A DNA stretch of 64,000 bases. It comes from Selaginella moellendorffii. Taxonomy: Eukaryota > Plantae > Lycopodiophyta. Location: positions 3,592,443 through 3,656,442 of the forward strand of contig NW_003314265.1 of the NCBI RefSeq assembly GCF_000143415.4, written 5' to 3'. Shown piece by piece: positions 17,499 to 36,929 of this stretch; position 1 is the first letter of the stretch; each line of letters opens with the position of its first letter. Below the pieces are notes generated by a model. That model was not told the origin of the DNA. It did not search any database and worked only from the letters and a program-made list of their open reading frames with translations. A program made the position numbers and the translations under genes.

Positions 17499-18697
17499 GA
17501 TACAAATAATTCTTTGGAAATATAAATAATTAGAAAAATATCTGACCTAGAAAAAATTAAAATGAAATTTCTATTATTATTAATATGTTATACATAAATT
17601 ATATTTTTACTTGGGATAAACTTATATTAAGATTTTATCAAATAAAAATGAAAAATCACTAAGATTAATTATTACTCATTTATTTCGAATATTTCGAAAA
17701 TAAAACAATAAAGTTTTATAAATATTAATATATTACTACCAAGATCAATTCAAGAAAATAATTACTAGCAAAATCTTTTGTAAATATATATGCTATAGAA
17801 ACTGTAATTCCATAGTATTATTTACTAATAAATTATAATTACAGTTAGGAAAAAGATTTCAAATATTACTGCTTAATTAAATATTGCATACAGTATCTTA
17901 GTTTTTCGAATAATGAGTTAGATTGTAAATAGCTAAGGCTACATATAAAAATATAATATATACTTCTATTGTTAAAATTGATTTGCTTTTTTGTATTAAC
18001 ACTTGAAACTTTGATCAGGATCCTACACATACATAAAACTAAGTCAACCCACATTTGATTTTGGGTTTCATATGTTATAGTGATATTTAGACCGGCCATT
18101 TATATAAAATATAGTTTTCTTTACTATATTTTTAAATACTGTTAAATTAAATTATAAAAGTTAATTTTGACCTAAAATATTCAAATATTATATTACTTTA
18201 TAAAACTAGGTAAAGTTGATTATTTTATTCATAAAGCATTAAAAATAAAGCTATTCACTTAAAATTAGATATTCACTCTCGAGTAACCTATTCAACAAAG
18301 TTCAAATCTCTAGTAGTTTTGGATTTTGATTTCGTGATGCAACCAAAAACACACATAATCTATCACCTCATGGATACAACTTGTCATGCAAGAGCATTGT
18401 GTATTACCATATGGATAGCCTAAAATCTTTTTATACCACACTTCTATCACTATAGCAGAACTTACTATTAGAGTCTAGCTAGCACTTAGCACCTAATGTC
18501 CCAATCTTTGCACCCATGAATTTACTTGGTAAAGAAAGTAAAAAACTTAGCATCATGATGACTATGTAGATCTAGCACAATGAGAAGCATGTAATCTACT
18601 CCTCTAGTGCCAGTGGCTGAGAAACTACATGTCAAGCAATTTTTCAATGTAATGGCCAACATAATCCTCCCAATGTAAAGATCACAAAGAAAGTTAC

Positions 18698-19190
18698 CAT
18701 CTAAGCATAAGCTCAAGCCAAGATTAATTGCCACAGCTATTGCTGCAAGATCTCACTCCACTTTTGCATTTTCTAGAGCTTGTGCTACCACCTAAAAAAC
18801 ATAAAAGAACTCTTAAAACTTCCATTGAAAGGAGAATAGCTTACTTTGTTGATTGCTTACTCATGGTTTAGATGTGCTACTAGAGGCATCACACCACTAT
18901 ACTATCGAAGAAACTTTGTGTTGAATCTAAAGAAACAAAACAAAATAGAATAAAAACAAAGAAGAGAGAAAAAAAAAAGTACTTGTGATCTTAGTGACTC
19001 TCCCAAAATCTTTCTATCACTAGTGACCTGATACAAAGTTTGAGAAAATGCAATCTCACTGCAAGAAAATCCACTTACAACAGCACCTCCAGTATTGTTG
19101 CAGCTCATCTCAATTCCCAAAACAGGCAATAGACCAGCAGCCATAGCAAGAAAAGAAAGGGTGCCATGCAGGAATTTGCGCATTTGGGAC
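18698..19190 (-). pseudogene. GCP1: 5' fragment pseudogene of organellar TsaD/GCP1 (t6A threonylcarbamoyltransferase), introns retained
   Basis: Spliced translation LPVLGIEMSCNNTGGAV|VTSDRKILGESLRSQ|KFLR*YSGVMPLVAHLNHE*AINK|VVAQALENAKVE*DLAAIAVAINLGLSLCL follows the TsaD pattern VLGIETSCDDT.AAVV...QYGGV.P...H...AL..A....DL.A.AVT.GPGL..CL; contains in-frame stops. Confidence 0.8.
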
Positions 19191-19457
19191 AAATATGAGA
19201 TGTTATTGCGAAGGATTGGCAAGGGTATGTGCCAGAGCTTGCAAAACCCCAAAATTTAGGGAAAGAGATTTAAATATAAAAACCTGAAGGCAATAATAAT
19301 CAGGCCCATTGTCATAGTAGACACTCTCCACTAAACTCTAAAATTTGCCCTCTTAATTTCAACAAGTCTCCATTGCAAAAGGTTTGAGTATCAATGCTAG
19401 TTAACACTTTATATGTAAGCACCTTCTTCTCTCACCCCAAGCAAACATCAATATGAT

Positions 19458-20172
19458 NNNNNNNNNNNNNNNNNNNNNNNNNNNNNNNNNNNNNNNNNNN
19501 NNNNNNNNNNNNNNNNNNNNNNNNNNNNNNNNNNNNNNNNNNNNNNNNNNNNNNNNNNNNNNNNNNNNNNNNNNNNNNNNNNNNNNNNNNNNNNNNNNNN
19601 NNNNNNNNNNNNNNNNNNNNNNNNNNNNNNNNNNNNNNNNNNNNNNNNNNNNNNNNNNNNNNNNNNNNNNNNNNNNNNNNNNNNNNNNNNNNNNNNNNNN
19701 NNNNNNNNNNNNNNNNNNNNNNNNNNNNNNNNNNNNNNNNNNNNNNNNNNNNNNNNNNNNNNNNNNNNNNNNNNNNNNNNNNNNNNNNNNNNNNNNNNNN
19801 NNNNNNNNNNNNNNNNNNNNNNNNNNNNNNNNNNNNNNNNNNNNNNNNNNNNNNNNNNNNNNNNNNNNNNNNNNNNNNNNNNNNNNNNNNNNNNNNNNNN
19901 NNNNNNNNNNNNNNNNNNNNNNNNNNNNNNNNNNNNNNNNNNNNNNNNNNNNNNNNNNNNNNNNNNNNNNNNNNNNNNNNNNNNNNNNNNNNNNNNNNNN
20001 NNNNNNNNNNNNNNNNNNNNNNNNNNNNNNNNNNNNNNNNNNNNNNNNNNNNNNNNNNNNNNNNNNNNNNNNNNNNNNNNNNNNNNNNNNNNNNNNNNNN
20101 NNNNNNNNNNNNNNNNNNNNNNNNNNNNNNNNNNNNNNNNNNNNNNNNNNNNNNNNNNNNNNNNNNNNNNNN
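19458..20172. other. Assembly gap (715 N)
   Basis: Run of n. Confidence 1.
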
Positions 20173-20279
<107 letters not shown>

Positions 20280-22153
20280 TAATATAGCAATTTTTTAGCC
20301 TATAAATATTTTTCAAATATTTTAGATATTATCTTAAGATATAATTATCCTTTTTTTGTTTAAAGAAATTTTTAAAAAATCTTATAAATTATGAATTTTT
20401 TTTAAACATCTTTCAATCTAATAAAAATAAAATTACCTTTAAGATTGAAGCATAAGAAATCAATCTTGCATTTAAAAGTGTCATCTTGAGTCTCTAGACT
20501 TCACCATTAATACTCAGAAATAGAAAGTTGTAATTAAAACTATTTAGGACTAAATAAACAAGTGAATAAGCACTTAAACCCTATCCTTATCTTTTTTGTA
20601 TTCCATCATTAATGCACATCCATATGCTCAAGATCCAAAGAATAATGCTAAGCCTATCCTTACTCACAATTTTGATAAGAGCTTTTTTATAGATTAAATA
20701 ATTTAAGTTGCTTTTCTTTCTCATCCTTTGTGTGTTTGTTTATATTTAATTTAAGAATTGCTATAATAGTGCATAAGATCAAACTAAGCAAATCAATCAT
20801 TCTTCTCTTTTATTTTCTTTTTCTCTTTCTCTCTCTTTTGCGATACAAATTTTTCGTTAGTGACCACAATTTTTTTTTCTTTAAAGATCATGAAGAATTC
20901 GAAAAGAAAAGAGTTGTCTTTATTTTCTTCTAAAGTAAAACAAAATTCCTTTGCCATGAAGTTCTTTATAATAATATTGATGATTGATTTTAGGCCCTTT
21001 ATGCTTTATATTTTATCCTCAATAAACTTATGAATTTTTTCTCTATCCTTTTACTCCTTCCCCTTTGAACTTTGTGTTTATGCTCACTAATATAAATTGT
21101 TAAATGAGTGTTATATAGTTAGTAATAATTTATCTTGGTACTGCAAATAGAATAATATTGTGGAAAGACTTTGTATTACAAACAACGTAATGATCTTTTA
21201 TTGTCACAAATATAACTTTGGGTATTGAAAGATATATATGTCAATCAGTCTTTATAAATAATCTCAATTTACTACCACAATTGTAGGAAATAAATATTAT
21301 TGTTTTACTTTGTTAGCCCCTATTGTTTAAGTGTTAGTAAAAGCTTTTGATAGGCTTGTGGACCACTCTTGAGCTCACAAGCTGAAGAGTTGAGTTTGTG
21401 AGTTAAGCTCAATTTTCAACTATAATTTAATACAATATTATAAACTTTAAGCTATTAAGGTTATGATGAACTTAATTATTTTAGAACTTTCTACACATTA
21501 TATAGATTAAAATGTTCTAAAGGACACTTCTTGTTATAAAAATTTAAATATTAATTATATGCCATAATAGGGATGTTTGTTAGAACATATAATAAGATGT
21601 TTGCAAAAAAATATTCTTGTCACTTTTTTAAACCTGTACTCTATGCTTGCTAGTTAGTAAATGTCAAGTTTTTCAGAATTAGAAATTTATTAAACTTGAA
21701 ATAAGATTCAATGTAAAATGTTTGGAAGGAAAAAAAAAAACTATTGATGTATATAAAAGAGACACTTAGTTCTTCTTTAGCAACCATCTCAGAATAATTA
21801 ATATAACTAAAGACTAATAAGAAATATTAACATAGACCTAGTCAATGAAGATGAATGTGAAAATAAACAAAAAATTTAATTTCTCATATGAACTCAGAAG
21901 AAGAAAATGATTTTTTAAGATGACAAAATGATGACAAAATTGAAAAACAAAAAAAATCATAATGAAATAAGGAAATTTCAAGAGAAGAATGACAAGAAGC
22001 TAAAAATCTTATCAAAATAGTGCAACAAGGCTGTAAGAAACAAATCCCAAAGCCCCAAAAGTGGAGCTGAAGGCTCATGTAATACTGCGGTGTTTCAAAA
22101 TATTCTCCCAAAGTCTTAAACTAAGAAAAGGAAGAAGAGCAATTCTTTTATAT

Positions 22154-22617
22154 TGTAGCACACTTTATCTCTCTCCCCTTAAACTAACTGGAAAGGGGGC
22201 ATTTGCTTGATGAGAGAGCCCTTAGTGGCTATTTTATCCCCATTTGTCCCCCAAGGTTCTAAAGATTCACGGTGACAATATATCCAAATCTCATCCCATG
22301 ATCACATGCGCTACACTTAACCCCCCTTTAGAGATCTCAATGTCCTCATTGACTATTGACTAATAACCTCTACTGAGCCAAGGGGAACCAGCACCTCCAT
22401 TTCCAACCCATTTCTTTATTTCCATCGAACCCGTGCCATTTGCTTTGATACCAACTGTAGTGCACCTTATTTCTCTCCCCTTAAGCCAACTGGAAAAGGG
22501 GCAATTGCTTGATGAGAGAGCCTTTAGTGGCTATTTTATCCCCATTTGTCCTCCAAGGTTCCAAGGATCCACGGTGACAATATATCTAAATCTCATCCCA
22601 TGATCACATGCGTTACA
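22154..22617 (-). mobile_element. TRIM (terminal-repeat retrotransposon in miniature), complete
   Basis: 162-bp TG..CA repeats at 22154-22315 and 22456-22617; 140-bp non-coding interior; minus-strand PBS TGGTATCAAAGC (iMet-type, one mismatch) and PPT AAAGGGGGG; perfect 5-bp TSD TATAT. Confidence 0.92.
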
Positions 22618-24299
22618 TATATAGTGATCAAGAATGCAATCATGTGACAAGGAAGTCCTAGAGGCAAATGGGGTGTAATGGTTAGACATATGGGCCTTGA
22701 CTTAGTGGTAGTGTTTGCAAACATGGCTGTGGATGGAAAGGGACTTGGTACCAAAAAAGGGATATTGGGGAAGGGTTTTCCTTATATTTATGAGCATTCT
22801 AAGGATGCTAAGGAATGGATGATCAATCATGGACAAATGGCTTAATCCTTAAAAGACGGGACTGTGATGTAGGTGGTGTTGGATCACCAATGTGACAAAA
22901 GTGAATAGACATAACCTTAGCGTAATGTGTTGATATGTCAATGGTAACTTTGGGTGTCGATTACAGGATCAAACATATGGAGCACTTGGACCAAATGAAA
23001 AGCTTGAGTGGCATAGATGCCATTTTCAAAGCTGGCAAGTTGCTAAGTCCGAAATAAGATTATGGAGATTGTGAGTAACACTCTTCCATATGGTTGAAGG
23101 TGTGGTTAAGTGATTAAAATAGAATGGAAACATCTAATTGCTTACAAGGACCTTTAATAATAAAAATCTAAAATAAAAAACAATTAAGAAATTGCAATCC
23201 AACCCTTAATAAAACATGAGAAGCAACCACAACTTATAAACAAAATTCACGAACAAAGTATCACTCTTACCCATATTTATTCTTTTGCATATCACCCCAT
23301 ATTTGAAGAACTAATTAATCAAAATTTGTCAAACACCAACATAAGCACAATCAACTCAAGTAAAAAAAAATAGCAATGCTTTAATTCATAAAATTAACAT
23401 TTAATCTAGTGACTTTGATAAGAATGTACCATGTATTCTAATCCAGATAAAAAATAACAAAATCCCTCAGAAAATAATTAATAAAGTTGCAAATATCACT
23501 ATTGTCAAATACTTAATATATAAAACAATAGAACTTGGACCAATTCAACTAACACTCTTCAATATAGAAATTGTTGACAAAAAAAATATATAACCATTTA
23601 GAATCATCTGAAATATCCTAATCAAGATCAAAGATTAAGAGTTCAATTTCAAAAGTAACTTTTATTATATTTAAGATAGTTAAAAAACAATAGTCTTATT
23701 AAATATTTTTTGGATAAATCTAGCTTAAGATAGCAAATGCAGTCACATACTACTGAAAGAACATAATCACCTTTGAGAAACATTAAAGTATTCCTTAACT
23801 CTCTAAAGTACAACAAAGATAATTCTGAAGAAATTCTGACAAATTATTATTGAATGTTATAATTGAAATGACAACCTCAATGATTATGAAGAAGTATAAA
23901 TCTTGAAAGCATATGCAAAATTAAAGTCCCTTTTTAAAGTTGATCTCAACTGAGTTATCCTAAACCCCAATTTACTCAATAAAATTTAAAATTCAAGAAA
24001 ATAAACTCAAGAAAAAGTTCTTGACTCAAAAAAATCTAACACTCAAAACTATACCAACAAATGCTTAGAAAATAGTGTGATCAATTGAGAATCAAATTTA
24101 AGCAACTCTAACCAATTTAAAAACAAATTAATTTCAAAGAAGAACTAACTATTTGATAAAAAAGATCTCAACTCATGCCAATTTTTAACCTTAAATAATT
24201 AATTGAATAAATTAACTTATGAATGGAAAATGATCTAAAGAAAGCTTTATATTGATAAAAATTTAGAGCATGAGGAAGCAATTGACATTCTTGATAAGT

Positions 24300-25700
24300 A
24301 CAAAGATGCTCTTAGACAAATTTGTAACAAATCCCTCCTAAAATATGCATACTCTAAATCAAACTTTTCTATTGAATTATAGCAAAGAAACAATTAACAT
24401 ATTGAATAAACCCCACTATGCAATTGAAAGTTTGATAATTTTGAGCAAATTAATTTCATTTACCTAATTCAAAATCCAAAATGGATATCACCACTAGTCA
24501 TTATTCTTAAAAATAATGGAAAATTTAGAATTTATATCAACTAACAAAAACTCAATGATGCAATATGAAATAACACATTTCTAATTCCTTTCTCTAATGA
24601 GAATTTGGATACAGTCACTAAACACAAAACATACACATTGCTCCATGATTTTTTATGATACAACCAAGTTCATATTACACCTGAAGATCAATATAAATAG
24701 TTTTTATCGGCCTATAAGGTGTTTATATTTATCTATGTATGCTATTTAGTCTTTCTAACACACCATTTACTTTTTAGAAAATCATTTTACCTTATTCATG
24801 CAAGTTTTCGTACATGACTTTAGCAATTTTAGGAATAAAAAACACAATCTCTAATGTCTCCAGAAATGGTTTGTCGAATGTTGAGAAAACAACATCATCT
24901 TAAATCCTAAATAGTGGACTTTCTTTATCAAAATTTAGAGTTTTACTTGGATATCTACAAAGAAAGCATCATTATCAATAAAGACAAAACCCTCACCATC
25001 AACACCATGCAACATCAAAAAAACATCACTGAAATTCAAATCTTTCTCAGCAAAATGGGATATCATTGATGATTTATTAAAGACTACATTAAAATTGCAA
25101 AACCACTAACCGAACTTTTAGAAATTAATCAACTTTATAAATGAACTCAAGAATGTCAATAATCTTTCAGCATAATCATTAATTTATTGACAAAGGCTCT
25201 AAAATTTGTTAATCAAACTAAAGAAAAGAGTTCAATATTCAAGTTGATACCTCCCTCTATACAATAGAAGTGATTCTTTCACAACAACAAAAGGATCTTA
25301 AAAATTAACTAATTTACTATGCTAATCAAACACTTAATTCAATTGACATGAAATATGTTACCACAAAAAAAAAAAAGCACTCAAAATGGTCTACACATTC
25401 TAGAAAATTTGACATTACCTATTTAGCAATAAAGTGAAGATTATAGTAGACTATAACCTTTTCAACAAAACCATCCTCACTAGTAAAATTGCTCAATAAT
25501 TTTTATTCCTTTAAAATTATAACTTTGAGATTATCCATAAATTTAGTAAACAACATGAATAAACTAACCACCTTAGCTACATTATAACAAGTGAACAACT
25601 AAAGTACAATATAAATATCTGACAACCCTAACTTTAATATTTTATTAGTCCATACTTTACCAACTTGAACTACAACTACTTAATAATAGCAAAGATACCA
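24300..25700 (+). mobile_element. Highly decayed Ty3/Gypsy pol (RT and RNase H); flanking AT-rich DNA ~23.2-26.3 kb is probably the same element
   Basis: From 24482: WISPLVIILKNNGKFRIYIN*QKLND...YNQVHITPEDQYK* (RT start). From ~25230: FNIQVDTSLYTIEVILSQ...IYYANQTLN (RNase H). Many stops and frameshifts. Confidence 0.85.
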
Positions 25701-26409
25701 AGCCAATACACTACTTTTGACTAATGCAAATATTTATCATGAGGATAATATCATATTTAGTTGTGGGAGGAAGATTGTACAAGATAGAAGAAGTCAAAGT
25801 ATCAATAATGATGGCAGAGTGGTGGAGACTTATGTTGGCTACAGTAAGACTACACCATGCGATCCATGAGGATTTTTATAAGGCACTAATATTCCTATAT
25901 TAGATCTATTTATCAAGTATTTTACTAACATGACTTCATATCATAAAAAACTGACATATTCCTAAGTAGATTAGAGATCAAATTAAGCCTCCTCCAGTTG
26001 AACAAGGCTTTTATTCTCCAAAAAAACCAACTCTAAACTATTGTTAAGGCACAAAACCAACAAAAGAGCCTCAATAAAATGTTTTCTTATACATGAAACC
26101 AACAAAGAGCAAAAAAAAGTCTTCACTAGGCCTCTTCTAATGACAAGTAGAAATTGGTGCCAAATAAGTTTGAGTTTTAAAGAGACCAATGATCCAACCA
26201 AACCAAGAAAGGTCTTCAATTTTCTCTTCATGTATTGATCAAATTATCTATATTCAGCTTAAATGTTAGATTTACAAACTTTAAACATTTTGTAAGCAAA
26301 TCAAAATAGATTAAAGAATATTCAGGAATATAGCTGAATATTTTAAGATTATCCACAAATTTTTTAATTTGTATTTTATCTCTCTAGATTGCTCCATCGA
26401 TCGAGCAAC

Positions 26410-30800: not shown

Positions 30801-31749
30801 CAATGAGAATGGTCTGAGGCGTCCTCCAGTGGTGAGGAAGAAAATGGTGGCGAGGATGGCTCAGCGCGAGTCGTTTGGTGTGATGCGGAGGCCCGGTGGC
30901 GGCGTTGTGGACGGCATTTTTTATGGGATGGAGGTTCCAGCCAGGAGGACGAAGTCTGTTCTCCGGGCCGCGAGAGGGGCGTCGGCGGAGCTTCTGGACG
31001 ACGTGTTGGAGGACAGGCGGTATATTGAAGAGGAGGAGACGAGGCAGAGGCCCGTGGTGGCGCTCCAGCAGAGGATGCAACGAAAGAAGAGCTTGATGCT
31101 AGTGAGAGCCGGAGCCGACGACGAGGAGGATGAGGATGAGGTGCCTGTGACTGTCCAGAGGAGGGCAGTGTTTGCGAGACCAGATGGTCTCCAGCGGCAG
31201 AGGTGCTTGGACGAGGAGGAGGAGGAGGATGAGCAGTGGATCGTGCACAGGACTTCCAAGTCGTGCATGCCGAGAAAGAGGCAGCGGGCACTGGGACCCA
31301 GGGCGAAGGCAATGGCTCGCCAGAGGATGGCTCTGTTGGAAGAAGAAGAAGAAGAAGTTGATGGTGGTGGTGGCGAGGAGTATGATGAGTTTGATGAGGA
31401 CGATAATGGTATGGATGGCAATGAGGAAGACGAGGAAATGGAAGTGTCTCTTCCCATGAAGAGGAGGAGGTTGCTTGCAAAGCAGCGAGCACTCTTGCAG
31501 CAGCAGGCTGGGAATCTCGCCATGAGCAGGGGGAAAAGGAAGAAGATGAAAGCCGGGCAGGCGGTGAATGGTGGTGGAGCTCAAAACAACAACCAATGTA
31601 AAATAGTGAAAAGCGTTTTTGAAAGGATTAGTTTCACCAGCACAGCGAACACGAACAGGGCCGGGAAGAAGAAGCTTACCAAGTCAGGTGGTGGCGGTGG
31701 ATCGGGAGGAGGACCGAGAACGGTGGTGTTCTACGGGGACGTATCGTGA
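27893..31749 (+). CDS. RBBP6/Mpe1/PQT3-like E3 ligase (DWNN, Zn knuckle, RING) with a long RS-rich and acidic C-terminal exon
   Basis: MAVHYKFKSAKDFDSVPID...TSVLVRRVP (DWNN); PPPGYICHRCGVAG|HFIQHCPTNGDP (CCHC); ELRCPLC..LKDAVLTSKCCFKSYCD.|.IRN..C.CG..DDLLPNKTLRE (RING); PLSREEFEARKAD; SVFERISF near the end. Joining of the last exon is inferred. Confidence 0.88.
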
Positions 31750-33286
31750 TCATAGAGGTACTCGCTCCCTCTTCACTAAGTTTTTGGTTTATCTGTAGGT
31801 AGTTACTTCTCGGCCGCGAGCTCTGTTTATATACGATTAGTTCCGCTGCGTCTTATGTTCTGTGTTTTGTGTTTCAAGGACTTACGTAGGTGGATCGCTG
31901 GTGGCCGGCTGAGCTTGGGATAACTCGTTACGATTTATGATCTGCCTGCGAATAATTTCCTTCGCTTGCCTAGGTAGGGGAAAAATATATATCCTTTCTT
32001 TGTCCCGTTGAGGCAGGTGACAATAATGCAAAGATCTGAGAGATTTAACGAGCAAAGGTACCTTGTAGAAACGAGCCGGCCAGTGGCGCTGGCCGCTGCA
32101 GAGAGAAAGAAGATACGCATGCATAACAAGGGCGTACAACTTAGATTCCGATGATTACGTACCTGCGGTGAAAGCGAAGAGTTGCATAAGTACGAGTTGT
32201 GCACGTAAGGTGCGGGGTGGGACCTCAGGGTGATACTACTAAACGTACAGAATGATAGAAAGAAGTCTTTCTTTGTGGTGATTCCTACCTGCAAAGACAC
32301 AATCTCTGTCTTAGGACAGTTCTATATAAACTTCAAACCTTTCCACGATACGTGATGGAGTGGTCGGGCCGTTGTCATTATCCTTGCACGAAGAGGCTCT
32401 GGATTTTAAATGTATACCTTTTCTCTGGCGGACGACAGTTAGCTGCGCAGTTGACAAAGAAAAATAAAAACATACCCCCATTAACTGTCAAACCAGCAGA
32501 TTTTGTGGAGCCGTCTGTGTCGTCCAGCGAAGACAAAGTCACTTTTTTTTATAGTGAGCGCTCGGCACCTGGTTGGCTTCCCCTGGATCCACACACAGAG
32601 ACACCCACTTTAGTACACGAAAAAGGAAGTACACGGACATATGCCAGTGGAAAGGATAAAGATGACGATGATTAGCGGCCTGCGGTGAAAGCGATGTGCG
32701 TGTGTAATCCTTCGTACCTATGCACGTCCAGGAATCTTGCGCAACTCGCCGCCGCCGCCGCAACCTCCTTGACTGCGTTGATGTGTTCTATCCCGCGCAC
32801 GTCGCTCTGACCGGACCTTCCTCCCCAGATATAGGTGGGTCCTGCTTGTCCGCTAGCTTCCCCTTGCTTGGGAGCATAAAACAACGCACCTGGATACGCT
32901 CACGTGCACAAAAGAATAACTGCTGCTGGTGGTACCACACAACCTGCCTGCAAGAGGAGCAATCGCCACAAGTCAAAACCAAATCTGGAGTTGGCATTAA
33001 GTCAAGAAAGTGAGCCCTCCCTGCTTGCTTGCATTAGCTGGCCGGCCTTTTACGCCCCGGAATGTGGTACCTACACATCCACTACGAAAACAAGAAGACG
33101 ATGGATGGATGGATGGATGGATGGAAAGAAAAAAAGCGGCATTTATACTGACCTCGTCCTTTCTGAGTAATAGCCGGAAAATATACACAGGCCCTCTCGT
33201 CTCTGTAACCGTCTCCACGTGGTAGAAGTCCAAACGGCAGCCCAATGAATAACTACTTCAGCTGAAACCCCCAGTCCTGCATTGTG

Positions 33287-33293
33287 TATATAA
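33287..33293 (+). promoter_or_regulatory. TATA box upstream of the orphan ORF
   Basis: TATATAA starting 50 bp before ATG 33337. Confidence 0.5.
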
Positions 33294-33336
33294 GGGCTGG
33301 AGCGAGCTCTCTCGCCTCGGCCGGTGATGAAGCCTA

Positions 33337-34629
33337 ATGGGTCATATCAGGACCAGGAAGCATACCCGGAATTGCCCGTGCCCGAGGAAGCCGCCTATAC
33401 CAAAGACTGGAGGACCTTTGCACATCCGGCCATGGACGATATCTGACTTCCCCCACCGCCGGCGCCAGTTCCTGCTCAGAGAATCAAAGAGAGTCATTCC
33501 AGACGACGACGAGTACTTCGGCCAAAAGTGCACCGACATTACCGAAACACAGCGGCACCTGGTCCCGCTGCACGCGTTGCATCCCAATCTGCTCAACGCC
33601 CCGGACCCGTTCCACAACAGGAAGGTGACGTCCGTCACCGAGTACATCTCGCACATGGGAAAGCCGCGGACGGGACCTCTGATAACAACGGAAGCGTCAC
33701 CTTATCACGGGAACAAAGCAACGAGCATCACCGAGTACCTGAGGTATGTGCCTCCCGCACACCTGGGAAAGGATGGACAGGACGCCGTCTTGCCTCACTA
33801 CGGGATAAAGGCCACTGACGCCACTGGTGCGTTTGACGAGCGGGCTGAGCCGACCATCTTGACTTACATGCTGCCACATCGTCCGAAGACCGCACCCACG
33901 GTCGTCTTCCCGCAGCATGTAAGCCCAGCGGTCCTGGTCAATGCGATAGCGGAGAGAAGACGGATGTTCCTGGAGAAGCCGCAGCCGCCTTCCATGCCGA
34001 ATTCTGCAAGAGCACCCGACAAATCAGCACCAATGGGCGAAGCTTTGGTGAATACCGGTTGTAGTACTGCGAGGTCCGACGCGGGTATAAGCTATGGAGA
34101 TACGACTGCTCGCCCGAAGACTGCTTCTTCTCTCCCAGAAACAAAGCCGTCAGCTCCAATGAGCGCAAGGCTACCGGAGAGTTCCTGTCCCACTCCTCGG
34201 TCCGACCGTGCTGCTCCACCAACACCGAAGTCTTCTAGACCAAACACTGCAAATGATGCTCAAACGATGAGAACCATTGGCAAAACTGGTATTGACCAAA
34301 CACCGAGGACCCCAACCGTTACTGATGTAAGGACAGCACCTGGAGTGGCAACAACAGGCGGCATCCAGACACCTTGGTCTCCTGCTCGTTCCTGTGCCAG
34401 CACATCCAGGTCCAATGCCAGTGGCAAGTTAAGCTCAAACGGTTCCGAAACACCAGCATCTGTGTCAACTACACCTCTTTGCGGTGAGCCTTCAAGAAAC
34501 CAGAAGCCCTGCGGAGCTGAGTTGTTGTCCAAGGCTGCTGAGAAACTCGGACCGGACAAGATTCAGAGGATAACCAATTGGAAGGGCCTCTTTGCCGAGT
34601 CCAAACCAAGGATGGCATGGAGATGTTAG
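33337..34629 (+). CDS. Uncharacterised intronless 430-aa basic, Pro/Thr-rich repeat protein
   Basis: Long ATG-initiated ORF with an upstream TATA box, four copies of an aromatic-x3-K-x-T-[SD]-x-T motif and RP[KN]TA motifs. Confidence 0.75.
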   Translation: MGHIRTRKHTRNCPCPRKPPIPKTGGPLHIRPWTISDFPHRRRQFLLRESKRVIPDDDEYFGQKCTDITETQRHLVPLHALHPNLLNAPDPFHNRKVTSVTEYISHMGKPRTGPLITTEASPYHGNKATSITEYLRYVPPAHLGKDGQDAVLPHYGIKATDATGAFDERAEPTILTYMLPHRPKTAPTVVFPQHVSPAVLVNAIAERRRMFLEKPQPPSMPNSARAPDKSAPMGEALVNTGCSTARSDAGISYGDTTARPKTASSLPETKPSAPMSARLPESSCPTPRSDRAAPPTPKSSRPNTANDAQTMRTIGKTGIDQTPRTPTVTDVRTAPGVATTGGIQTPWSPARSCASTSRSNASGKLSSNGSETPASVSTTPLCGEPSRNQKPCGAELLSKAAEKLGPDKIQRITNWKGLFAESKPRMAWRC

Positions 34630-34679
34630 CCTAGGACGACCTGTACATTTACTGGAAAGGAAAAACTGAACCTTCTAGC

Positions 34680-36013
34680 TCAGTGATGCTTGAGATTCCA
34701 CTGGATATTGCATCTCGTTTTCAACATCCTCACAAGATGGCAGGCCTTCGGACTGTCATCGAGGACAAATCTGTAAAGCTTAAGGAGTTCCTGCATATCG
34801 CAAGTGTCAAAGAAGAGGCAACAAGATTGCTGGCAACAAGACTACCTGGATACAGCATTCCGAGGCTCTTGCGGTGAATTGGACGCCTGTATTCCTCTGT
34901 AAAAGCAGGCATATGAGAAACACGAACGAAATACCGTTGATACATACCTTTAAGAGCTCCCTCACATTAGCATCTATTCCCTCAAAGCGAAAGGCCAGGG
35001 TGATCGAGGACACGGCTAATGCTGCAGGCCTAAATCTGAGCATTTCGTATTCGGTGAGTGAGAGACACGCCAGGAACTCTGCGGTTCTAGCGATTTTGGT
35101 GCTCGCGTTGACGCCTTCAAGATAATACCTTCACAGCGGAGTACATTACATAAAAGAGAATTAACTCCAAAAAACCAAACCTTAGAAAGATCATTGCAGT
35201 TGGCACTTCACACTTGTAGCAAATCGCCTCCAGTAAAATGCGTTCGGCAGTAAGAACGTCATGGATCTTATAGCGAAAGAGCTCGCTGAGCTGAAGAACA
35301 GGCCTGATTTAACCAAAACATTAAACACCAAGTCAAGTCACAGGATTACTCACGAGAACTTCGCCTTGTTCTCTTCATATTTGATGGCCACGGCCATGCA
35401 TGCAACGGCAAATATCCCAAGTACGCTCTTCGCGATGCAGTTCTTCATAGCCAGTAAAAGCATATCCAAAAACGTCGTTGCGAGAAAAACTGTCTCGTTG
35501 TGTACTGCCATGCACTAAATGGAGCTAGACGAGTAGAAAGAAAAAGCTCTAGAAATTACATTAAAGTACCTGGAAGAACTTTACGACGATAGATCCTCTC
35601 GCTACGGAGTCCAAGCAACATGTATCATCCAAATATCCCCATAGAAGCGTCTGCTTCGCTTCTAGATGAAGCAATGCTTCCACATGGTCCAGACGGAGCC
35701 TCTGATAAACAAAGCATTAGAGAATTTCCAGCAGTAGCATCAAGAAATCGATGACCTTGTTGGCATTTTGGGATGTATCACTCGTAATACAGCTTCCATC
35801 GCTGCCGCTGCTGGTGCTACCACTGGCAGAACATTGGCCTCTCTTCCTCTTCTTCACAGGGACGAGAAGTTGAGCATCACGCTCTCTAGCGGACGGAATG
35901 CGATCGAAATCTACAAGACAACAGCGATTATCGTTACCAGGCACCACGATTTCACTGATTTCCAGCGCGATGTACCCGGCCGCCTCGAAAATCTTGCGCA
36001 TCGAGGCCTCCAT
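34680..36013 (-). CDS. Divergent cyclin, multi-exon
   Basis: Spliced: ARGSIVVKFFQ|CMAVHNETVFLATTFLD...IFAVACMAVAIKYEEN...|YKIHDVLTAERILLEAICYKCEVPTAMIFLR (cyclin N box); YEMLRFRPAALAVSSI...CIQ|ELLKLY (cyclin C box). Confidence 0.85.
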
Positions 36014-36929
36014 TGCAACTCCCAGGCGCCGGCCTCGCAGCGCGCCATTTTCCCTGCTCAAAAATCCCCCAAAACCCTAGCGAGCGGCTCAACGGACAGG
36101 ATCGCGTGAAGGGAGTCAACCATTTGAAAAACGCAACGCCCTTGGCGCCAGGCGCCGGCTGGCTATTCCAAACCGGAAGGCCGAATGGCCAGCTCATTCC
36201 GTTCCGGAATCCGCCAACCCCTTTGCTAGATACAGCGGCGACGCTAAAATGTGCCAGTGCTGCTAAAGCCATTGTGTGTGTGTGTGTAAGCATCCTTCTC
36301 GTCGCCCACAACACCACACACACACACTCACGACGCAACACTCTACGCGTCACTCATTGGCCCTCAAATCCCTAATTTCTCTTTGGGCGGGATGCTTGGC
36401 GCTTGGCGCTGGCTGCTCGAGCTGCTGGATTAGATGGAGGCGGCGGCAGCTAGCAGCTCCACAGATCAGGGGATGCTTCGTCGGCGAGAATGCTAGCGGA
36501 ACGCTTCCATAGGGGTAAGCTAGGGTTTTTCGCCGCGCGCCTGTGCGGGGAGCTAGGGCGGTAGCTCCGGAGGGCCCGAGAGCAGCAGTAGCAAGATCTA
36601 TCGCTGGCGTCGTCGCTCTAGGCTGTGGATTGTCGGCAATGGAAACCTCGGAGGCCGTGCATTTCGTTCGAGACGATGCCGTCGCGCGTCAAAAACCCTG
36701 GATAGGGTTTTTGTAGATTCTGGAAGGAGAGAGCTAGCGTCTCATCCCATCTCGGTCAATGCCTGAGGAGGAAAAACTAGCTCTTCTCACGATACTTCTT
36801 CTGGTAAGCTTATTCATTAATTTCCATGTTTTCTCTTCTTTTATCCTTCACCTGTAACTCATCTTCTTTCGGTTTTCCCTTTTTTTCCATTCAGATAAAC
36901 GAAAACATTTGGTGACAAGCGGTTTCTCC

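Follow-up and report, generated by a model that had tools for sequence, protein, structure and literature searches.

The microtubule-associated proteins (MAPs) tau, MAP2 and MAP4 carry repeats of 31-32 residues, a length compatible with the period of the tubulin lattice. Proteins of the SAXO/MAP6 (STOP) type are also built on tandem short motifs. Dacheux et al. (2012, PMC3280300) recognize them by a repeated 15-residue Mn-like motif, in which position 6 is a conserved T/S and position 12 a conserved F/Y, and by an N-terminal Cys-rich motif, and list true orthologues for Physcomitrella and for Chlamydomonas (FAP257). According to Gopal et al. (2025, PMC12228683), the Mn motif is a small helix that targets the lumen. 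Here we compare with these systems the protein encoded by an uninterrupted open reading frame (ORF) of 430 codons plus stop in a 64,000-nucleotide stretch of Selaginella moellendorffii DNA (NW_003314265.1, positions 3,592,443 to 3,656,442, forward strand; referred to as the window, in whose coordinates positions are given). The frame lies on the plus strand at 33337-34629, as stated in a preliminary description of this DNA, which had taken its product for an orphan repeat protein resembling the Mn-motif proteins. Judged by similarity, the ORF is the Selaginella member of a previously undescribed land-plant family that was detected only in liverworts, lycophytes and ferns. As an explanation we favor a male-gamete-associated repeat protein that would dock onto the lattice of spline or axoneme microtubules, with a confidence that leaves the matter evenly balanced.

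An exhaustive single-sequence HMMER phmmer search of 1.84 billion representative sequences (E<=0.001) returned 13 matches. The only database proteins nearly identical to the ORF were SELMODRAFT_428110 and SELMODRAFT_406044, while 11 matches were remote homologues (30-36% identity, E values from 4.8e-19 to 6.1e-05), all of which aligned across the repeat region within residues 57-290. The named homologues, each annotated as "hypothetical protein", were found in the liverworts Marchantia polymorpha (Mp2g03000 / MARPO_0075s0061), Riccia fluitans and Calypogeia fissa, the lycophyte Diphasiastrum complanatum, and the ferns Ceratopteris richardii (three loci) and Adiantum nelumboides, and three further homologues came from public sequencing runs (SRR33208241, SRR33208242 and SRR33208280). 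Profile searches added two fern paralogues, one each from A. nelumboides and A. capillus-veneris. Word-index profile searches were dominated by low-complexity words or restricted in length; they returned only proteins of at most 354 aa and did not widen the family to mosses, hornworts, gymnosperms or algae. With the Selaginella protein as query, the word-index search recovered only its two public models. No Pfam family matched the Selaginella protein at E<=10, and six gene identifiers from Selaginella, Marchantia and Ceratopteris were absent from the literature searched, in keeping with the earlier view of an undescribed protein. The term "orphan" is not entirely apt, since 11 remote homologues exist. 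No seed plant was present among the named homologues from the exhaustive and profile searches, and angiosperm orthologues, whose retention the preliminary description had named as evidence that would speak against its proposal, were not found among the 1.84 billion representatives.

Four repeats about 30 residues apart had been described for this protein, and closer examination confirmed them. Motif copies of about 20 aa begin at residues 60, 92, 123 and 154 (spacings of 32, 31 and 31 residues), and the loose pattern [YFH][FHY][GN]xKxTxxT matched the Selaginella protein four times, a number never reached in 20,000 composition-preserving shuffles, 19,995 of which gave no match and five a single one. 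A lack of conservation among homologues had been named as grounds for rejecting the earlier proposal; instead, the family shares the consensus [YW][FY]G[RK]xx[TS][DN][VI]T[DE]xL[RK]xxPP[SA]H (59 pattern matches in 14 proteins, a few of the matches being off-by-one duplicates). Y60, G62, T69, P77, R136 and P139 were invariant across 14 sequences, while H79, P153, V162 and T163 as well as the repeat 3 residues R126, L135, P140 and H142 were nearly so. Repeats 3 and 4 lie 28-31 residues apart in the 12 members in which both could be located. The N-terminal module holds 3-4 repeat copies in the family, with an extra copy at the extreme C-terminus of several members, and the Selaginella protein has four YFGR-type units in its N-terminal 200 residues, where at least three define the family.

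Three RPxTA motifs noted in the preliminary description were located at residues 182 (RPKTA), 259 (RPKTA) and 301 (RPNTA), and within the first of these R182 was invariant in the full-length alignment and P183 nearly so. The basic tail rich in Ser, Thr and Pro was likewise borne out (pI of the protein 9.9; residues 200-430 consisting of 13% S, 12% P, 12% A and 11% T), and the C-terminal motif of the Selaginella protein was also visible in ferns and liverworts. An AlphaFold2 model of residues 1-220 built from a 14-row family alignment predicts disorder (mean predicted local distance difference test score (pLDDT) 55, predicted template modeling score (pTM) 0.19), with short helices at residues 68-72, 98-105 and 131-137 immediately C-terminal to the T..T[DE] repeat cores and a helix at residues 197-212 as the sole confidently modeled element. 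Structural neighbors proposed by the ESM Atlas were disregarded, all having template modeling (TM) scores <0.5 on a model with a pLDDT of 0.38, and neither the Selaginella protein nor the Ceratopteris repeat domain yielded usable feature matches in this resource.

In three close species pairs the repeat domain was 71-80% identical against 22-33% for the middle tail, and between Marchantia and Riccia the nonsynonymous rate (dN) was 0.22 in the repeat domain versus 0.54 in the tail, with the synonymous rate saturated. The repeat module is therefore the constrained part of the protein, and the tail keeps its composition, not its sequence. A maximum-likelihood tree of the repeat domain, in which Selaginella forms a long branch, divided the family into subfamilies A and B with moderate support (92/91, below the 95/80 threshold). 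Subfamily A comprises Selaginella, Diphasiastrum, the fern A copies, four liverwort sequences and one sequence from a public run, and subfamily B consists of fern paralogues and one public-run sequence. The Selaginella protein displays all hallmarks of subfamily A, i.e. an RPx[ST]A-PQHV segment, a basic S/T/P tail and a C-terminal LxPEKxxxxxW motif, and most members of this subfamily have further RPx[ST]A copies in their tails. The tails are basic in subfamily A (pI 8.8-10.7) and acidic or neutral, or RGG-rich, in subfamily B. The Adiantum paralogues P0018 and P0019 (subfamily B) have C-termini rich in RGG/GRG, a typical feature of proteins that bind RNA or form condensates, so that very different tails have come to be joined to the one repeat module. 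One relative from a contig of run SRR33208280 (P0012, 714 aa) combines the N-terminal repeat module with two C-terminal YFG/WFG..TYVT[ND]P units, and also contains an internal triplicated RPLG..P.GxM.DYVP motif that is absent from the other members.

The composition of the tails bears on the possibility that the protein acts in the male germline outside the cytoskeleton, as a sperm nuclear or chromatin-condensation protein whose tail would bind DNA in the way of SPKK-type histone tails while the repeats would mediate protein-protein contacts. Subfamily A proteins have a pI of 9.6-10.5 and tails with 12-15% K+R, 26-38% S+T+P and several [ST]Px[KR] sites, the basic N-terminal patches of family members resemble nuclear localization signals (e.g. 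KLKKKK in Marchantia), and the male-specific expression in Marchantia detailed below fits a chromatin protein equally well. However, it is the repeat module that is conserved while the basic tail diverges fast, fern subfamily B retains the repeats with acidic or neutral tails, and no histone H1 or protamine-like domain was detected in the Pfam scans. Protamine-like proteins moreover have a K+R content far above that of the repeat-family tails. Taken together, we regard a chromatin function as rather unlikely.

With regard to the gene model, both public models contain predicted introns in the tail region; SELMODRAFT_428110 (354 aa) and SELMODRAFT_406044 (317 aa) agree with the ORF over the first 245-332 residues and then enter other frames. 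The second haplotype (GL377663.1) contains a 1,293-nt frame of identical length with 11 substitutions and no indels, while the flanking 13 kb differ between the haplotypes by 1.7% with 20 gaps. Both public models have departed from the frame long before the C-terminal motif at about residues 395-417. In Marchantia, Riccia, Diphasiastrum, Ceratopteris and Adiantum, the length of each homologous gene equals (aa + 1) x 3 nt, so these genes are intronless, as is the majority of family genes. Because of the haplotype frame, the conserved C-terminal motif and the intronless orthologues, the two public models are wrong at their 3' ends, and we take the uninterrupted 430-aa ORF to be the right gene model in place of both. 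The description of the gene as intronless was thus correct despite its spliced public annotation, and the present analysis corrects two mis-spliced Selaginella reference gene models. The TATA box reported upstream of the gene was also recovered, 50 nt 5' of the ATG. A (GGAT)n microsatellite, skipped as a repeat in the read mapping, is located at 33094-33138, about 200 nt 5' of the ATG.

Expression data for the family were available from Marchantia, where Julca et al. (bioRxiv 10.1101/2020.10.29.361501, Supplementary Table 3) place Mp2g03000.1 among 765 male-specific genes (row "MARPO Male 765"). In that atlas a gene counts as sample-specific when its specificity measure (SPM) ranks in the top 5%, and isolated sperm are among the male samples sequenced from Marchantia, although the "Male" class is broader than sperm alone. 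The Marchantia orthologue is thus male-specific in the atlas of Julca et al. For Selaginella, two raw RNA-seq runs of unspecified tissue and two contig sets were mapped on positions 31500-36500 of the window. Both raw runs contained zero reads over 32335-34840, while in the same runs the upstream DWNN/zf-CCHC gene reached a depth of 40-90 and the gene past the cyclin gene that follows the ORF a depth of 10-18. Vegetative-only expression, named earlier as an observation that would argue against a sperm protein, was accordingly not encountered in either species.

The contig runs exhibited only low depth (0.6-6), over 32845-34004. Two joints in these contigs, 33081>33153 and 33678>33739, have CT..AC ends corresponding to minus-strand GT..AG introns of 71 and 60 nt, respectively, and one low-depth contig reaches upstream of the TATA box. 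Because of these minus-strand splice joints and the extension beyond the TATA box, the weak spliced transcript over the 5' half of the ORF and its promoter is probably antisense. The 71-nt skip covers the GGAT microsatellite and could represent a length polymorphism instead of an intron. An origin of the contig coverage from the 3' untranslated region of the cyclin gene was ruled out, as the cyclin contig stops at 34653 and 34005-34505 has zero depth.

These observations raise the question of whether the Selaginella locus is a decaying relic or a chance ORF whose real product is the weak antisense transcript, acting as a non-coding RNA. The missing sense reads in the two RNA-seq runs, the restriction of coverage to low-depth contigs with minus-strand joints and the long branch of Selaginella in the tree are all compatible with this scenario. 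On the other hand, the 430-codon frame is intact in both haplotypes without a single indel, all residues that are invariant in the family are kept, the C-terminal motif is preserved 390 codons past the start, and silence in ordinary RNA-seq is expected of a sperm-specific gene. A relic is therefore improbable, and the Selaginella gene is real, functional and constrained in its repeat module.

To return to the kinship with SAXO/MAP6 proposed in the preliminary description, the repeat protein does resemble this group in being basic and largely disordered, in its tandem short motifs with a hydrophobic residue six positions past a conserved Ser/Thr, in the short helices predicted at the motif, and in the restriction of its family to organisms with flagella combined with male-gamete-associated expression. 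In contrast, the register of the repeat family is [TS]-x5-L and not [TS]-x5-[FY], its repeats have a conserved aromatic-x-Gly-Arg head and a PPxH foot, and their number is 3-5 as opposed to 6-12 in SAXO/MAP6 proteins. At motif position 13, six residues past the conserved T/S, Leu was present in 27 of the 59 matches and R, E, A, D or S in others, while neither F nor Y was among the six commonest residues at this Mn-equivalent position in the 14 proteins. No conserved N-terminal Cys cluster was observed in the family, as the first 30 residues contain two Cys in Selaginella and none or one in the 13 other members. Pfam STOP (PF05217) was not matched by the Selaginella protein at E<=10 or by 12 family members at E<=1, and full-length, domain and single-repeat profiles each gave no match at E<=10 among 177,635 distinct PDB sequences, a set that includes axonemal doublet structures with their microtubule inner proteins (MIPs). 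With the single sequence as query the only PDB match, to serum albumin (E 0.35), was taken as chance.

A divergent SAXO/MAP6 member whose repeats are true Mn motifs could account for the [TS]-x5-hydrophobic register with its predicted helices and for the confinement to flagellate organisms, but Leu stands in place of the aromatic residue, the Cys motif is absent in most members, and no match to PF05217 or the PDB was obtained. Moreover, with genuine SAXO orthologues present in Physcomitrella and Chlamydomonas, the repeat family would be an extra, unrelated family. We consider such a relationship very improbable; membership in SAXO/MAP6 is not supported by the sequences, and the likeness to Mn-motif proteins is one of analogy, i.e. 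short helix-forming motifs at regular spacing in a basic disordered protein.

The resemblance to tau, MAP2 and MAP4 is of a comparable kind. Like these, the repeat protein is basic, Pro/Ser/Thr-rich and intrinsically disordered, has three to four imperfect repeats of 31-32 residues and contains many proline-directed phosphorylation sites. Tandem repeats of this length in a basic disordered protein are thus present in Selaginella (32, 31 and 31 residues; pI 9.9; pLDDT 55), which constitutes resemblance and not membership. The tau repeat ends in a PGGG foot where the YFGR repeats have PPxH, there is no sequence similarity between the two, and the tau-family repeats are metazoan, unlike those of the land-plant family. 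Pfam scans of the Selaginella protein and 12 members gave no match to the Tubulin-binding repeat (PF00418). A superficial likeness was also noticed between TEYISHM and TEYLRYV of Selaginella repeats 2 and 3 and the (S/T)EYxxx(F/Y) motif of the microtubule-binding repeats of the MDM1/CCSAP type; the TEY triplet is Selaginella-specific whereas the family consensus is T[DE]xL, and the likeness fails at the family level. In its distribution the family is similar to the divergent BLD10 identified by phylogenetic profiling (Koshimizu et al.), which is present in spermatozoid-forming plants and not in seed plants and is expressed at the male stage in Marchantia. BLD10 has an algal and an animal orthologue (CEP135), whereas none was detected for the repeat family. 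The family does not appear in the text or the text supplementary files of Koshimizu et al. 2021, an absence that is likely due to the lack of an existing or detectable Physcomitrium member, and the Mp2g03000 identifier is absent from the text supplementary files of Hisanaga 2019.

The regular repeat architecture, the occurrence in taxa with swimming sperm and the male specificity in Marchantia invite a lattice-binding hypothesis. A role in spermatids or spermatozoids appears likely to us. There the protein would act as an extended, largely disordered structural component whose evenly spaced motifs might attach to a periodic lattice much as tau-type repeats or short helical MIP motifs do, and the likeliest such lattice would be that of microtubules, either in the spline/multilayered structure or in the axoneme, with the basic, probably phosphorylatable tail modulating the binding. 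That the evenly spaced repeats indeed bind spline or axonemal microtubules is, by analogy with these systems, possible but somewhat short of an even chance. Still more tentatively, the family may be an innovation of land plants from which the microtubule cytoskeleton specific to sperm is built, a tau- or MIP-like "staple" whose repeats of about 31 residues would track the tubulin lattice of the spline/multilayered structure or of axonemal doublets. At the molecular level almost nothing is known of the structural proteins of the land-plant spermatozoid, in particular those of the spline, of the multilayered structure and of what plants have added to the axoneme. If this proposal were true, the cytoskeleton of the embryophyte spermatozoid would gain its first specific molecular component, one that disappeared along with swimming sperm in seed plants. 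As Mp2g03000 is single-copy and intronless, the lattice-binding hypothesis is directly testable in Marchantia.

A number of points weigh against the lattice-binding explanation. Microtubule binding and localization of the repeat protein are a guess from analogy, and no similarity was found to solved axonemal or other microtubule proteins or to any Pfam family. The exhaustive search, which employed single-sequence phmmer only, detected no member in mosses, hornworts, Ginkgo, cycads or streptophyte algae; because these groups also have flagellate sperm, the fit to motile sperm is imperfect, although fast divergence may be responsible for the non-detection. Loss in seed plants is common to many gene families without a link to sperm. 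The male-specific call depends on one atlas, and sense mRNA of the ORF was not seen in the two RNA-seq runs and two contig sets from Selaginella. Finally, basic S/T-P-K/R tails suit chromatin proteins as well as MAPs, and since subfamily B joins the same repeats to acidic or RGG tails, the repeat module need not have a single partner.

A further alternative is a disordered scaffold or regulator of male reproduction that is tied neither to microtubules nor to chromatin. In spermatids or antheridial cells it could, for example, provide docking or form condensates, or else it could serve proline-directed kinases as a substrate hub. The disorder predicted by AlphaFold2 and in the low-scoring ESM Atlas model, the RGG tails of the fern paralogues, the missing similarity to known cytoskeletal families and the breadth of the atlas "Male" class all conform to this alternative, whereas the strict spacing of about 31 aa and the invariant aromatic, Gly, Thr and Pro positions suggest docking on a periodic surface, and the distribution fits taxa with motile sperm. 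We therefore judge a scaffold of this kind unlikely, though a more serious contender than a chromatin protein.

The preliminary description had further pointed to an AACCGTC heptamer upstream of the gene as a possible binding site for DUO1, a MYB factor with male-germline targets. This heptamer is present in both haplotypes and fits the consensus RRCSGTT (Higo et al. 2018) on the opposite strand, and the identical heptamer was found in the same orientation at -186 in Diphasiastrum, where the exact heptamer is expected by chance at about 1.5% and any variant within 250 nt at about 21%. In Marchantia, Riccia, Calypogeia and the public-run loci Logan8 and Logan12, the 500 nt 5' of the ATG contained no DUO1 site. 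Overall, the eight promoters contained 7 DUO1 sites in 7 kb versus a background of 0-0.9 per kb; the motif is thus not enriched across the family, and the sites provide weak support that is limited to lycophytes. The Mp2g03000 identifier was absent from two supplementary text files of Higo et al. 2018. The coordinates of the promoter elements, the repeats and the remaining protein features are compiled in Table 1.

Table 1. Features of the Selaginella repeat-protein gene and its promoter (positions in the window; aa, residues of the 430-aa product)
Feature	Position	Strand	Remarks
AACCGTC, -130 from ATG	33207..33213	+	both haplotypes; fits DUO1 consensus RRCSGTT on the opposite strand
TATATAA, 50 nt 5' of ATG	33287..33293	+	same in both haplotypes
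Complete intronless coding sequence, 430 aa plus stop	33337..34629	+	frame in both haplotypes, C-terminal motif, single-exon orthologues
Repeat 1, aa 60-79, YFGQKCTDITETQRHLVPLH	33514..33573	+	Y60, G62, T69 and P77 invariant in the family
Repeat 2, aa 92-111, FHNRKVTSVTEYISHM..., Y-x-R-K-A-S-S-I-T type	33610..33669	+	degenerate or lost in liverworts
60-nt stretch skipped in one contig, CT..AC ends	33679..33738	-	run X5, depth 3.6
Repeat 3, aa 123-142, YHGNKATSITEYLRYVPPAH	33703..33762	+	best-conserved unit; R136 and P139 invariant
Repeat 4, aa 154-173, HYGIKATDATGAF..., VTDP type	33796..33855	+	about 31 aa past repeat 3 in nearly every member
Conserved post-repeat segment, aa 176-212: RPKTA, PQHV, amphipathic helix aa 197-212	33862..33972	+	
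Tail, fast-evolving, basic, S/T/P/A-rich, presumably disordered; S/T-P-x-K/R sites	33973..34518	+	
C-terminal motif L..KLGP[DE]K..RI..W.G, about aa 395-417	34519..34587	+	E = 4e-06 versus Diphasiastrum

Both neighbors of the repeat-protein gene were represented in the mapped Selaginella data. The convergent cyclin gene (Cyclin_N/Cyclin_C) occupies approximately 34653-36050 on the minus strand, and the contig at its 3' end stops about 25 nt past the repeat-protein stop codon. Six short introns of this gene (50-55 nt) were confirmed by contig joints. In the upstream DWNN/zf-CCHC gene, a 121-nt intron at 31756-31876 was covered by 70 spliced reads (22 and 48 in the two runs), and both alleles were read at 31695 and 31918, consistent with expression from the two haplotypes. 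Elsewhere in the window, a strongly AT-rich block spans 18000-26000, with a GC content of 0.21-0.34 compared to about 0.50 in the remainder, and includes a perfect (TA)52 array at 20173-20277.

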